Shown piece by piece: positions 52 to 63,227 of a stretch of 64,000 nucleotides of DNA. Position 1 is the stretch's first letter. The number at the start of each line of letters is the position of its first letter. The notes beneath the pieces are model-generated. The model made no database searches. It was not told where the DNA came from and saw nothing but the letters and a program-made list of their open reading frames with translations. The stretch is from Isurus oxyrinchus (Eukaryota). The translations under genes and the position numbers were made by a program. The DNA lies in the NCBI GenBank assembly GCA_026770705.1, contig JANJGN010001130.1:62001-126000 (forward strand), in the 5' to 3' direction.

Positions 52-91
52 ATGATCGGGAAATCTTACTTCCTCCTGTCACTTCTCCAAG
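52..91 (+). CDS. Gene A leader (signal peptide) exon MIGKSYFLLSLLQ
   Basis: ATG at 52, hydrophobic core, phase-1 donor CAAG|gtaat; paralogous copies at 38519, 40794 and 61000. Confidence 0.85.
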
Positions 92-3000
92 GTAATATCA
101 TCATCAGCTCGGACAGACTTTTGGTTAATAGTCTTTGTAAAAGATCATTCTTATTGAACTCTAATTGGGAACCGATTTAGGAGTGACCCAGTGTACAAAC
201 TCACACCATTTCCCATTCACCCATCACCCCTGTGCTCACTGATATACACTGAATCCCTGTCTGAGAGCAGAATTGGAGGAGAGCAGAGGCCTTGGAGGGT
301 TGTAGGGGCTGGAGGAGTGTACAGGGATAGGCAGGTTTGTAGCAGCGAGAGCAGAAACTTAAAATTCAGGTGCTTTCAGACGTTGGTAAGTGAGCGATGG
401 GGATTGATGACTTGAGTAGAGAAGCAGGGATAAAAACTGGGGGGTGAAGCCTATCCTGCTGCGAGGTCTCCGATAGCAATGGTCTGAAATTTGTGTCCTT
501 TGCTGCCTTTATTCAAAATTTCCCATGAAGACAGCACAGCAGCTCCTAGAATAGACAGGCTGTTCAGTGTCACACTTCCTGTCCATTCTCACCTTGCTAG
601 ATACTTCAATAAGGGAGCAAGATAACTGAAAGAGAGAAGGAAGGTAAAGCTGTCCGTGTGTAAAGGTGTCAAATATTCTGAGTTATCATGAGTGTCTCTG
701 ATCTGCTGCAGAGTTCAAATTTCACAGAATATTAGCACTTTGCAGCTCAGAGAGAGACCATTGACTCACTGCCTGAAAGGGCGGTGGAAGCAGATTCAAC
801 AGGAACTTTCAGAAGGGGAACTGGATAAATACTTGAAGGGAAATTTGCAGGGATGTGCGAAAGGTGCTGGAGAGGAATTGGGAAAGAGTCAGCACATGCA
901 CAATGGATCAAACAAGCTCCTCCTGTGTTGTATCATTCAACAATCAGACAATTTAAGACCCTTGTCAGCAAATCTTCAGAATCCTGCTGAATCACAGATG
1001 TTTCAGAAGGACAGGGAACAAGAAGTTTCTGGTATCAGCATTTCATGTGGGGCCCAGTTCAGTTTGAACAAAAAAAATGACAACAGCATCTTTGAAAGTC
1101 ATGAACCCACCACAGCGGCACCTCCGACACATGCAGAGCTCAGGCTAGAGGCACTATGTTAGTGTGTTTCACAGTGTCTGCTGGAGTAGGGTCAGTGCTG
1201 AGCTTGGGGACAAGTCAGTCTACAATGCTGCATCGGAATCAACAATACAACAACATGGGGTTTGGATCAGAAATAATCCCTTAGACAATGAGGATCCAAA
1301 GAGATTCCTGAGACAATGAGATTCCAAAGAGATTCCTTATTCCATTGGTTGTCTAACTGGGGTCCATGATTTTCCAAGGGGTCCTTGGCAGAATCAAATT
1401 ATTGAGCAATAGTGTGTAAAATACCGGAGAGAACGGGAAAGGTGGGATCAATGGAAAACTGTTCACTCTGTTTACACTAATGGGAGTTAGTCTCAGTAAT
1501 GGAGACCATGAAACTATCATCGATTGTCATACACACCCATCTGGTTCACTAATGGCCTTTAGGGAAGGAAATCTGCCGTCTATATCTGGTCTGGCCTACA
1601 TGTGACTCCAGACTCATAGCAACGTGGTTCCTCTGAAATGTCCGAGCAAACCATCCAGTTCTCACCATGCTAGAAACTTCAATAAGGGAGTAAGATAACT
1701 GAAAGAGAGAAGGAAGGTAAAGCTGCTCATGTGGATAGATGTCAAATATCCTGAGTGATCATGATTGTCTCTACTCTGCTACAGAGATTATGTCACGGGA
1801 CATTAGAGATGGGCAGCAAATGCTGGCCTTGGCAGCGATGCCCACATCCCATGAATGAATACATTTACAAAATCTTATTACTTGGAAGGTGCAAGTGCAG
1901 GTTGTTATGATCCTTGAGCAGACCCTCTCAGCACTGACCCTACTCCAGCAGACCCTGTGAAACACACTAACAAAGCGCCTCTCGCCTGAGCTCTGCATGT
2001 GTCGGAGGTGCCGCTGTGGTGGGTTCATGACTTTCAAAGATGGTGTTGTTTATTTGTTCAAACTGAACTGGGCCCCACACAAAACGCTGATACCAGAAAC
2101 TTCTTGTTCCCTGTCCTTCTGAAATATCCGTGACTTCAGCAGGATTCTGAAGAGTTGCTGATGGAGGAACAGACACCCAATTTTTTTTGATAATTTACAG
2201 TTAGGAACCAATAATATTTTGTTTCAAGTAGACGAGGTTTGAGATTTAAGATGCTTGTGAAGAGAATAAAGCTACAAGATTCCATGGCTTTTAAACAAAC
2301 AAAAATAAACTTTACTGCACCAGCTCAGAAAGATAAAATAATTCACAATATCCACCTTATACTCTAACATTCTGGATTAATATGAGCTCATGTGAATTAA
2401 CAGGCAAACTGTGGTCTCACAGCCACATTACTCATTAAATTGTAAACGCAACCAAGATAGAGCCCATGGATTTCACAACAACCCACCCGGACATCAGTGA
2501 ACACTGTCAGTCAACCAATCTCACTGAAACTCTGTTTCTCTCATGAGGGATTCCAATCTTCAACTTCGAAGATCTTGCCTTGGAATTCTCTCCAAAAGTC
2601 GCTTCAACTCGGATGGCCTCAGTGACATTCGACCTCACAGGGTTTCCATCTCTTCTCCTGAGGCTCCATTGCCCTGGATTCCCGACTATATACTCAAGCA
2701 CCACTAGGATTAGATGAAAGGTTTTGATTGACTGGGTAGACAGAGAATGTTCCCTCTTGTGGGCAGGAGAATAACTAGAGGCCGAGTGATTGGTAATTCC
2801 TTAAACATTGAAGAGGGAATGAACACCAATCAGATTGAATCAGATTAGCCAATCAGCTGTGTTGAAGAGCAGACAGGAATGTTAGGCTAATTAGTGATTC
2901 ATGACGGTGATAATGGGGGGAGTTCTGAGGGCTCCTAATCCATTGTCCTGTCTTGTAAATCAGCACTGAATGGATCTCAGTTGGTGTGTCTTGTAGACAC

Positions 3001-60310: not shown

Positions 60311-60999
60311 TGAACAGTCGATGGCCCTTCAACCACATTCTTGGCACGCAAAGGGTTAACAGTTTTCTAACAGTGCGAGGCAAAGAGCTGCTTTCTCACT
60401 TGGTACCAAGACTTCCAATTTTGTCTCACAGAGACACATCCACCCTTTCTAATTAAACACACAGAGGGAGCAGCACAGGAAGAGGTCATTCAGCCCAAGC
60501 AGAGCGTGTGGGCAGTTCCCCCCCAGGCGAGCAGTCGGACAGGTTCTGGGTAAGTAACGGAACGATTGGAATTCACTTCCACCACCAACACCGTCCTTTG
60601 TTGATGTTGTGACTTTATAAAGACAGATTCCAATGATTGATGCCTTTGAAAGATTTCTACTGATTATTGAGATCTGGGTGTGAGGCTCAAGTCTGTTGTA
60701 CAGAACATCTTTCTAGCTCAAGGGATGAGGGAAGTGCAGAGACATGAGCTTTGGGATGCCCTGAGGTGGTGAAAGGTGCTATAGAAATGCAAATCCTTCA
60801 TTGTTTGTCTTACTTAAAGCCTTGTAACTCTCTGCAGAACACCTATCATCCCACAGAGAATCAAATTAGTCTGTGAAGACATTGTCTAAAAGCAGTTCTG
60901 ATCTCTCGAGAGCTGTCGGACAAGAGGTGAGGTCTCATTAACTCCTTTCTCTTTCACAGCTTGAGAGTGAGAAGTGGATGGAATATCTGGGAGTGGACG

Positions 61000-63227
61000 A
61001 TGGTCGGGAAATCTTACTTCCTCCTGTCACTTCTCCAAGGTAATATCATCATCAGCTCGGACAGATTTATGTTTAACAGTCTTTGTAAAATTTCATTCTT
61101 ATCTCTTTATCTCTGTAACCTCCTGCAACTCACCCAAACAACTTCCCAGATCTCTGTGCTACTCCAATTCCGGCCTCTTGACCATCCCCCGATTCCCATC
61201 ACTCCAATACTGGCGGCCGTGCCTTCAGCTGCCTGGGGCCTGAGCTCTGGAATTCACTCCCTAAACCTCGGGGATGGAGGAGATCAGAGGGTTTCATTTT
61301 ACTGAGAATCACCACGACCACATCACAGCTGCAGTGAGAATAGACAGAGAGTCCAGCCCTCACACTTCCTGCACAGTTTCACCATAGCAACCACAATATG
61401 GAAATTTAAAAATACTGAAAGTTAAACTGAAGCTCAAACCAGTCAGTGTAGAGAGATGAGATGTTTACACAGTTTCCCTGTGTATCTTGTAGACACTGTG
61501 TTGGGTGGAAGACTGGCTTCACTAAACAGGGTCCTGAGGACCATGAGCCAATGTAGAATGAACTTGTCCACTCCAGTGTCCAGGATTCTCTTCCCTCCGT
61601 TGTGAAACCTTGGGGAGATCCCTGTGTGTCCTGTAGATGGTCCACACTGCAGCCACTGTGCCCCACTGATGGAGGGGGTGGATATCGAGTCTAGTGGATC
61701 TACAAACCATCCAGAGTTAAATATTGATATTTCTCTCCCCAGTTGGACTGTCACAAGAGTGGAAAGGCGACACGCCACGAGAGGTGACAGCACAGGAAGG
61801 TTTGTGTGTACAGATTTTATGTCATTACAGTTACTTATCAAATTTCGTAGGGAGATCACGTGTCGGAATCTGGTTGAAAGGAATAGATGGGAACCCTACA
61901 GCCTGAATGGTCTATAGCCTTTCACTCCGAGGTTCACAGTCACAGGGATCAAAGATTCCGCCATCGGACCCGACTGTCTGGAGACCTGAAAGATGGTGAC
62001 TGTTCCGTGATTATAAACAACATCAGACGGGAAGATGCAGGACCTTATTTTTTCAGAATAGAATTTGACAGCAGGAATAGATACAACTACTACCCTGTAA
62101 CCCAGCTTCACATTTCTGGTAAGTGCTGTGTTATAATTACAAAACAATTCACATTCAACACTCAATGGGAAATAACACAAACTGTGACGTTTACATATTA
62201 ACACAAAACACAGCTTATTATAACTTGCTATCTGATTCTCAATAACCTGGTGATTGCTTCCAGTTCAGTCCTAAAGCAACCTCTAATACTCACTTTAATA
62301 TCAATGATGAAAAGCATTAACTGTATTATCAGGTTACCACACCCATCAATCTCTCCTGTCCTGTTTAAAAGTCTGACGTATCGATAAAAGAAAGATGTGC
62401 ATTTCTGCAGCGCAATTTACCACCTCAGGAGGATCCAAATCCCTTCACAGCCAATGAAATTATTCCTGAATTGTAGTCACAGATGTAAAACACAGCAGGC
62501 AGTTTGTGCACAGCAAGATCCAACAAACCACAAGGTGATAAATCACCCAGATCACTGAGGAAATGAGAAGCCAGTGAACTCAAACCTCTGGTCTGATGAA
62601 GAGTCATACGGACTCGAAACGTTAACTCTGTCTTCCTCTCCACTGATACTGTCAGACCTGCTGAGTCTTTCCAGCAATTTTTGTTTTTGTTTCAGATTTC
62701 CAGCATCCACAGTATTCTGCTTTCAACTCCAATCTCTGGTCTGAGCCTCTTCTCTCATCCAGTGTTCTCAATTCACATGTCTCGGAGTGAACGTGTATTA
62801 AGCTGAGAGACAGAAACACTACTGCCAAAGAGCAAGAAAATCTCTCCTGATCATTGTAACCTCTCAGTTCTGATATCATCCTTTTAAAAGTGCTTTCTCT
62901 TGTGGCGCTGTGGTTTCTATTTGAACTGATGCTTCACATTATATTTCTCTAAAAGGATCCATTCTCTGTCTGTTAGATTTCACAGATAAACCCATGATAT
63001 TCCCTGCTGAAATTATTGCAGGAAAGCGTGTGGATGTAAGCTGCACCTTCAACACAACGTGCAATGGAACAGCAGCACCTGTCTTAACCTGGGACACTCC
63101 CACTGACGTACCTGGATCAGTCTCAAACACTGTAACTCAGCATGGTGTCACTCTGACCTATACTTCTGTTCTGACCCTGATCCCATCACTCAAACACCAT
63201 GGACACACTCTCAGCAATGTATTTTAG
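61000..63227 (+). pseudogene. Gene D: Siglec-like pseudogene (leader 61000..61039, V 61743..62118, truncated D2 62977..63215)
   Basis: V exon is 376 nt (not a multiple of 3) with an in-frame TGA at 61904-61906; D2 homology ends at 63215 just before the F-strand Cys, then TAG at 63225-63227 and the 33-bp array. Confidence 0.85.

Follow-up and report, generated by a model that had tools for sequence, protein, structure and literature searches.

The 64,000-nt window analysed here, positions 62,001 to 126,000 of contig JANJGN010001130.1 of the shark Isurus oxyrinchus (the whole stretch, with coordinates counted from its first letter), quite probably carries part of a large tandem cluster of Siglec-type receptors resembling the CD33-related group, in which related ligand-binding heads are joined to different signalling outputs, without a strict inhibitory/activating pair. 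Translated searches and self-comparison delimit four gene units, A (52–16781), B (29471 to ~38075), C (40794–58204), and D (from 61000 to a satellite at 63227). The DNA is of vertebrate type, intron-rich, and interrupted by five N gaps; all relevant coding parts, including the leader, Ig, TM, and cytoplasmic exons and exon copies described below, are found on the + strand. Homology searches were made exon by exon, protein lengths are given as sums of exon lengths, and the phases and splice sites of the exon models are consistent throughout. The processes that shaped this cluster would be segmental duplication, the unequal exchange of blocks of exons, and gene conversion over short tracts.

In A, B, and C alike, the V exon, which encodes the first immunoglobulin (Ig) domain, passes the cut-off of Pfam V-set. 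Those of A and C also exceed the Ig_CD22 cut-off of 27 bits (46 and 35 bits, respectively), whereas the V exon of B, with 22 bits, remains below it. The exons of the second domain (D2) behave in the same way, with A and C above the cut-off of Pfam C2-set_2 and B below it (17.6 bits vs 21). The V exon of gene A matches Ig_CD22 with an E-value of 7e-12 and the structure of Siglec-5 in the PDB with 2e-14. The solved relatives that score best with it are Siglec-5, MAG, sialoadhesin, CD33, Siglec-8, -10, and -7 (E-values from 2e-14 to 1e-10), and the scores of Siglec-5, MAG, sialoadhesin, and CD33 all lie within one order of magnitude. The top PDB matches of the V exons are Siglecs throughout.

The essential arginine of strand F is present in A, C, and D (Y[YF]FRIE), with YYFRIE of A aligned to YFFRVE of Siglec-5. 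In gene B, the position aligned to Arg118 of MAG is occupied by a tyrosine (YYFYVD). Cysteines typical of Siglecs are those of CxxxPC in the V domain and one in its strand E, to which D2 adds a CxxxxxC pair that serves the inter-domain bond. Gene A has SCTQIPC and DCSL (the latter with the strand-E Cys) in V, as well as SCTFNTTC in D2, and the V domain of gene B has SCVVIPC and NCLV. Genes A–D are thus predicted to be Siglec-type receptors, an identity that an earlier note, made from the sequence alone, had proposed and that the Pfam and PDB matches and the aligned arginine bear out.

A scan of 1.84 billion proteins returned 1376 relatives, the closest of which (50–75% identity) all come from sharks and rays, so that the assignment of this DNA to a cartilaginous fish in the same note was right. 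These relatives carry the NCBI names 'sialic acid-binding Ig-like lectin 8/10/11/12/13', 'CD33-like', and 'MAG-like'; models of Cetorhinus, Carcharodon, and Mustelus are 85–93% identical over single exons. Flanking marker genes that could establish synteny with the tetrapod CD33-related cluster are absent from the 64-kb window.

Gene A combines its head with a long stalk and a tail of inhibitory type. Its leader exon (52–91, reading MIGKSYFLLSLLQ, with the phase-1 donor gtaat) matches the Cetorhinus model P0004 at its N-terminus with 100% identity and is followed by the V-set exon (3524–3889, 366 nt, phase 1-1) and by the D2 (C2-set) exon (4748–5044). The stalk is encoded by the seven Ig exons that come next, each intact and 282 nt long (6015–6296, 6956–7237, 7738–8019, 8789–9070, 9877–10158, 11144–11425, and 12183–12464), all of them open, with both the acceptor (..ag) and the donor (gtgagt) intact and with four N-x-S/T sequons in each. 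The transmembrane (TM) exon (14042–14138, phase-2 donor gtaagt after AA) encodes an uncharged span, and the juxtamembrane cytoplasmic exon (14834–14915, RKTAMEERVSG...KHQ) matches the tail of P0004. The last exon (16533–16781) carries an immunoreceptor tyrosine-based inhibitory motif (ITIM, LLYTNI) and an immunoreceptor tyrosine-based switch motif (ITSM, TEYAQI), 23 residues apart, and ends with a stop codon. The exon lengths add up to 1034 codons. The long stalk, the uncharged TM, and the ITIM+ITSM tail attributed to this gene from the start were all found.

Gene A would accordingly resemble the mammalian CD33-related Siglecs (CD33, Siglec-5, -7, and -9), which likewise have a V-set head with the essential Arg and the Cys pattern, C2-set domains, and a TM segment, as well as a membrane-proximal ITIM and a distal TEY..I motif, and which also form rapidly evolving tandem clusters. 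The spacing between the two motifs of Siglec-7 is 23 residues, as in gene A. The likeness is one of sequence, with MAG and sialoadhesin scoring like Siglec-5, and gene A differs in having seven or more near-identical stalk domains. By its motifs, it is a putative inhibitory receptor, in which D2 and no fewer than seven glycosylated Ig stalk domains would carry a V domain of the sialic-acid-binding type, and in which the ITIM and the ITSM, once phosphorylated by Src kinases, would attract phosphatases of the SHP type.

The mean pairwise divergence of the seven stalk exons is 0.063 at synonymous sites (dS) and 0.024 at nonsynonymous sites (dN), and their introns are 85–94% identical; by this divergence, the exons are evidently real copies under constraint rather than assembly stutter. 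The question extends to the whole window, since repeated exons and gene copies might result from collapsed or expanded repeats, or from haplotypes placed in tandem. Two of the five N gaps do adjoin repeated exons, and long satellites are present. Nevertheless, the copies differ by 3–15% and can be told apart by their introns and indels, spacing and microsatellite are particular to each stalk unit, stalk exons are spliced to one another in contigs of public runs (see below), and long-stalk and multi-copy models occur in other sharks (for example P0009, with 1463 aa). An assembly artefact is thus a very improbable source of these copies. The gap at 12475–12605 is intronic and begins 11 nt past stalk exon 7; its flanks fit a single repeat unit with ~80 nt missing in comparison with unit 5. 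Two degraded pieces of the same exon type are located at the borders of the stalk region: a remnant with an internal deletion at 5254–5370, and a truncated 3' piece at 13156–13227, which consists of the last 24 codons only and has no acceptor.

Gene C starts with a leader exon (40794–40833) that reads MIGKSYFLLSLLQ and has a phase-1 donor, as do those of A and D. The V-set exon (47028–47396, 369 nt) retains the arginine, and its patches corresponding to the C-C' and F-G regions are unlike those of A. It is followed by the D2 exon (49119–49415), by a single stalk Ig exon (53745–54026) with 94–97% nt identity to the stalk exons of A, and by the TM exon (55287–55383), the borders of which are set by GT..AG joints in the run contigs. 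Three cytoplasmic exons, cyt1 (56083–56167, phase 2 to 0), cyt2 (56679–56783, …VYENC…), and cyt3 (58088–58204, …LYANCDFAKDSVYGNL, stop, with LYANC…SVYGNL), complete the gene, the exon lengths of which add up to 463 codons. The right edge of the gap at 49576–50068 begins inside the 3' piece of a second, older D2-type exon (50069–50161), which is more diverged, open in frame, and retains its GT donor. As the gap opens into this piece and its flanks are not simply continuous, the number of exons of C between D2 and the stalk is uncertain.

The tails of A and C are unrelated, and the pair of an ITIM and an ITSM is found in neither C nor B. The TM segment of C, described earlier as different from that of A, is in fact homologous to it (62% aa and 75% nt identity), although the single-exon stalk and the unrelated YEN/YAN/YGN tail were described correctly; the cyt1 exon has to be added to that description. 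It was located between the TM and YxN exons by means of the models Carcharodon P0012 and Chiloscyllium P0007, and its insertion between TM and cyt2 brings the YxN exons into frame. Direct splicing of TM to cyt2 as the main form of C was rejected, the TM donor being of phase 2 and the YxN exons of phase 0.

Four public runs of two organisms, only guessed to be RNA, provided contigs that were aligned to 53700–56900 at a likeness of at least 90%; these contigs carry no information on expression levels. A GT..AG joint from stalk to TM (54026>55287) is present in three runs, and one from TM to cyt2 (55383>56679) in two. A loose contig end before 56678 corresponds to the end of cyt1 with the TAC variant of C, which is lacking in the three other cyt1 copies of the window, and another behind 56783 corresponds to the start of cyt3. 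Back-joints from 54025/6 to 53748/50 connect one stalk exon to another, indicating that long-stalk transcripts of the Siglec-like family exist; the letters at these joints partly disagree with the exon order of gene A, and paralogues may be their source. Genomic DNA is not expected to lack introns exactly between predicted borders, and their absence from these contigs indicates transcription of the YxN exons and their joining to the TM exon, which in turn is joined to the Ig stalk exon. Gene C is thus transcribed and spliced, insofar as the runs are RNA, and the proposal that YxN exons join a Siglec ectodomain in transcripts is supported for this gene by the stalk>TM and TM/cyt1>YxN joints.

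Comparison of the exons common to A, C, and D reveals that their likeness varies greatly along the genes. In the V exon, A and C share 89% of nt and 76% of aa, and A and D are 93% identical in nt over 1.7 kb. With four differences in 297 nt, D2 of A and D2 of C are 97% identical in aa; between C and D, the aa identity of D2 is 100% over the 80 codons kept in D. The sharing of leader, V, and D2 exons with a near-identical D2 therefore stands as it was first noticed, with the V exons less alike. Between A and C, the upstream intron and most of the V exon are 87–93% identical. In the C-C' patch (3601–3707), the nt identity is 45–75% in all three pairs, and in the F-G patch (3798–3887) it is 75–78%. 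The region ~4624–5050 (125 bp of intron together with D2) is 98–100% identical between A and C, with flanks at 69–88%, and the dS values of this pair are 0.013 for D2 and 0.18 for V. On both counts, the region, which encloses the D2 exon of A, is evidently a gene-conversion tract with sharp boundaries. At 4654–4713, A equals C while D differs, indicating that the conversion event involved A and C.

A second mosaic patch is visible in the V exon, where A (3678–3767) and C (47180–47270) are 98% identical over ~90 nt and D (61905–61995) is 80% identical to either; it suggests short conversion events within V. The likeness of the stalk exon of C to those of A stops within 20 bp of the exon, and the flanks are unrelated. 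Taken with the duplication blocks described below, these comparisons bear out the description of the genes as mosaics of common and unshared modules, and the cluster is best read as a patchwork assembled by unequal exchange and conversion. The role given earlier to gene conversion holds for the A–C tract over D2; homogenisation of the ligand-binding heads does not, given 76% aa identity of V and 45–75% nt identity of the C-C' patch.

The C-C' and F-G loops set specificity in Siglec-7 and -9. The head of gene C, related to that of A but unlike it in these specificity loops, would be carried by a short stalk and connected to a tail of a type that is conserved in elasmobranchs.

In the primate pairs SIGLEC5/14 and SIGLEC11/16, gene conversion homogenises the first two domains, and the activating partner has a charged TM and associates with DAP12 (PMC4042635). 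The shark genes are similar in being neighbours with partial conversion of 5' exons and with different signalling ends; they differ in that the tract covers D2 only, the specificity loops of V differ, and C lacks a charged TM for adaptors of the DAP12 type. The proposal of a paired system like Siglec-5/14 fails on both points, as neither near-identical heads nor a partner with a charged TM was found in the window, and, by the divergence of their V domains and C-C' patches, A and C evidently do not form a pair in the style of Siglec-5/14.

A looser form of this idea, in which A and C would be a true paired system with opposing outputs and C would activate through Grb2-type adaptors without a charged TM, draws on the leader, the D2 (by way of the conversion tract), and the stalk exon type that the two genes have in common, on the C tail, which has three YxN sites and no ITIM/ITSM pair, and on the splicing of C in the run contigs. 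We consider it improbable: identity between the V domains reaches only 76%, and it is in the specificity loops that they differ, the terminal SVYGNL of C also matches the ITIM consensus, the Grb2 site of CD22 sits in an inhibitory receptor, and the classical activating form, with an Arg in the TM, is present in other sharks (P0006 and P0019) and absent from the window.

The tails of CD22 (Siglec-2) and Siglec-10/G provide the closest parallel to that of C (YENC, YANC, and YGNL), as they also carry YxN tyrosines adjoining ITIM-like motifs. They differ from C, in which the TM is preceded by only two or three Ig domains and followed by a short tail of three exons, and the likeness of the tails is one of motif. 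Tyr828 of CD22 recruits Grb2, and does so in an inhibitory receptor (PMC3342095). The YxN tyrosines of C are putative sites of the Grb2-SH2 type as at this position, the last of them being ITIM-compatible as well. With this precedent, the earlier label of alternative signalling is fair for C, whereas an activating role is not supported. The only TM-proximal charge in C is a Lys at the cytosolic edge, replaced by Glu in the model from Carcharodon (the great white shark), and the hallmark of activating receptors is therefore lacking.

Gene B differs from the others in its head. Its leader (29471–29516, reading MGEVGLILIFISLLQ, with a phase-1 donor) was found through the Cetorhinus model P0158, which is 89–93% identical, likewise has Tyr at the Arg position, and is named 'MAG-like' by NCBI. 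The V-set exon (30337–30693), in which YYFYVD replaces the essential Arg by Tyr, is 29% identical to that of A and has MAG as its best PDB match (1.6e-14). The D2 exon (33170–33457) belongs to a lineage of its own, with 44% aa identity to D2 of A, and the D3 exon (33966–34223) is unique in the window; the head of B thus appears to be a separate lineage. Among the 150 HMMER representatives, no relative of the B type exceeds 37% identity, and a separate search gave the one Cetorhinus model. MAG (Siglec-4), for its part, differs from B in having five Ig domains rather than three and Arg118 in place of the Tyr, and B is located inside a cluster of immune type and carries the TM of C.

The 3' part of B is evidently a copy of that of C, as the block 34495–36797 (2.3 kb), which holds the TM exon of B (36277–36373, aa-identical to that of C), is 93% identical to 53500–55802. 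Within the copied block, the stalk-type exon (34729–35010) is dead: a Trp codon has become a stop, the donor reads AT instead of GT, and the pyrimidine tract is gone. An intact cyt1 copy is present 3' of the TM (37991–38075), with no cyt2 or cyt3 after it; downstream of this copy, the homology skips to sequence that in the C unit follows the last exon. An Arg-less head on the TM of C had been recognised correctly, although the absence of any tail had not, since the cyt1 copy is intact. All six exons of B (leader, V, D2, D3, TM, and cyt1) are open, with intact, phase-compatible splice sites, and comprise 377 codons; read-through of cyt1 adds ~20 residues, none of them tyrosine. Gene B may accordingly be described as a chimera in which an older, Arg-less, MAG-like V-D2-D3 head became joined to a copy of the 3' block of C, and, that copy having lost the stalk exon and the YxN exons, any product would be free of tyrosine motifs. 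B is plausible as an Arg-less receptor without a tail motif, and the part of a decoy that was first proposed for it is a putative one. Upstream of the gene, an inverted duplication with arms at 23138–23391 and 25899–26153 (96.5% identical) flanks the gap at 24468–24632, and each arm holds a short exon, 'MQSGEEDHLSSDP', corresponding to the first exon of the Cetorhinus B-type model.

Gene D is 93% identical to A over 3303–4986. Its leader exon (61000–61039) reads MIGKSYFLLSLLQ and has a phase-1 donor. The V exon (61743–62118, 376 nt) has a 10-nt insertion in the C-C' region and contains a frameshift and in-frame stops, and the D2 exon (62977–63215) is ended after codon 80 by the 33-bp satellite. 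The window stops at 64000. As assembled, D is evidently a pseudogene fragment, probably a recent broken copy of the 5' part of A, and it cannot be counted as the receptor gene that it was initially taken for.

A rival explanation is ordinary birth-and-death turnover, in which A and perhaps C would be working genes, B and D would be decaying by-products of unequal crossing-over, and the mix-and-match of modules would have no designed function. Besides the frameshifted and truncated D, it would account for B with its dead exon and without cyt2 and cyt3, for the exon remnants at 5254–5370, 13156–13227, and 50069–50161, and for the orphan leader and cyt1 copies. The latter include an extra leader copy (38519–38558, MIRKSYFLLSLLQ) that lacks a V exon to go with it, a cyt1 copy with a dead donor (40259–40343, GT changed to TT) 450 bp upstream of the leader of C, and another cyt1 copy (60465–60549) upstream of the leader of D. 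A module of cyt1, ~450 bp, and a leader occurs three times (37931–39166, 40204–41450, and 60411–61102), with 43/44-bp arrays before two of the copies. The leaders are found 0.7–6.2 kb upstream of the V exons, and none lies within 270 bp upstream of one. Turnover alone nevertheless seems rather unlikely to be the whole explanation, as the six exons of B have remained open and spliceable, Cetorhinus keeps a B-type gene with the same change of Arg to Tyr, and three types of tail are conserved across sharks and rays. A cluster in which related heads serve different outputs agrees better with these features.

Models from other species contain the same elements. C-terminal YxN..YxN tails are present in 8 of 150 representatives (from sharks, four ray genera, and a goby), ITIM..ITSM tails in another 8 of the 150, and short tails with Arg in the TM in Scyliorhinus torazame and Chiloscyllium; a charged (Arg) TM exon was not found within the window. 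A turtle CD22-like/Siglec-10 model has a tail ending in YENM..VYSNV. The A-type tail recurs in Cetorhinus P0004, and the C-type succession of TM, cyt1, (cyt2), and cyt3 in Carcharodon P0012 and Chiloscyllium P0007; in Carcharodon, one contig carries models of the A type and the C type, with accession numbers that directly follow each other. The NCBI Gnomon models of sharks and rays resemble the genes described here in leader, V, D2, stalk, TM, and the three tail types, with 65–93% identity exon by exon, although they are automatic predictions and some of them fuse neighbouring genes. The poorly resolved tree of V domains shows no clustering by tail type (18 changes, compared to a shuffled mean of 16.6). 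The presence of the tail types in models of many sharks and rays argues that the tail repertoire is old in elasmobranchs and that the heads were reshuffled on it. The modular system thus appears to be old in this group rather than local, and the view that it evolved independently here is not supported.

Several points weigh against a cluster of functional receptors with different outputs as reconstructed above. The gap at 12475–12605 may conceal more stalk units of A, for which seven is thus a minimum, and the gap at 49576–50068 may conceal one more exon of C, namely the rest of the second D2-type exon. The run contigs come from two organisms and were accepted at a likeness of at least 90%, the runs are only guessed to be RNA, and genomic paralogues could be the source of some joints, most of all those between stalk exons. 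The isoform in which TM is joined to cyt2 skips cyt1, which shifts the frame and ends the protein after ~32 unrelated residues, with no YxN. Finally, the tree of V domains is poorly resolved.

We can speculate, more tentatively, that elasmobranchs possess a system with three outputs (ITIM/ITSM, YxN, and Arg-TM), between which conversion and unequal crossing-over swap heads and D2/stalk exons and in which YxN is a distinct, conserved class of signalling that needs no charged TM, although we regard this extended form as doubtful. If it were true, modular and paired Siglec signalling would be older than the divergence of cartilaginous from bony vertebrates, and the absence of CD33-type inhibitory Siglecs in fish would hold for teleosts alone. 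A shark cluster in which a Siglec with an ITIM/ITSM tail occurs together with another conserved tail type and a member without the Arg would mean that the design dates to before or early in the history of jawed vertebrates, or that it arose twice. A natural series of stalks, the shortest with a single Ig domain and the longest with seven or more identical ones, and hypervariable C-C' loops on an otherwise constant scaffold would both be of use in asking how glycan-sensing receptors are tuned in reach and specificity.

The fish Siglecs listed in a published account are Siglec-1, CD22, MAG, and Siglec-15 only, with no CD33-related inhibitory Siglecs; that account concerns teleosts, with sharks unmentioned (PMC7226832). 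The whale shark genome paper merely lists Siglecs among gene families arising in jawed vertebrates. Skate MDIR and teleost NITR/LITR are also multigene Ig receptors of fish with activating and inhibitory forms (PMC3031540); they differ in having V domains of the CD300/TREM/pIgR or KIR-like type instead of the Siglec type. Literature searches found no description of shark or elasmobranch Siglec clusters in the library searched, and public automatic annotation already contains gene models predicting this design in sharks and rays.

The remaining features of the window are mostly repeats. A minisatellite with a unit of 33 bp is present as seven arrays, which occur in both orientations (15129–16342, 24826–25052, 27144–27501, 30826–31342, 39763–39973, 50341–53614, and 63227–64000), the largest of which, 50341–53614, has 99 copies. 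It occupies an intron in each of A, B, and C, in addition to interrupting the D2 exon of D, and, being open in several frames, is the source of long false 'proteins' in lists of open reading frames. A 24-bp tandem array (56913–57989) is located in the intron between cyt2 and cyt3 of C, a 63-bp array (32006–32600) in the V-D2 intron of B, and 43/44-bp arrays (36983–37829 and 59541–60305) after TM blocks. The gaps at 20311–20443 and 20573–20739 (both between A and B), as well as that at 24468–24632 in the 5' region of B, which sits between the inverted copies of the candidate first exon, touch no modelled exon. Upstream of B, low-complexity DNA rich in GA/GT extends over 27580–29204. Between A and B, an open frame at 17984–18478 resembles a fragment of a reverse transcriptase of the LINE (long interspersed nuclear element) type, and related fragments are found at ~33763–33930, 35328–35627, and 54345–54657.

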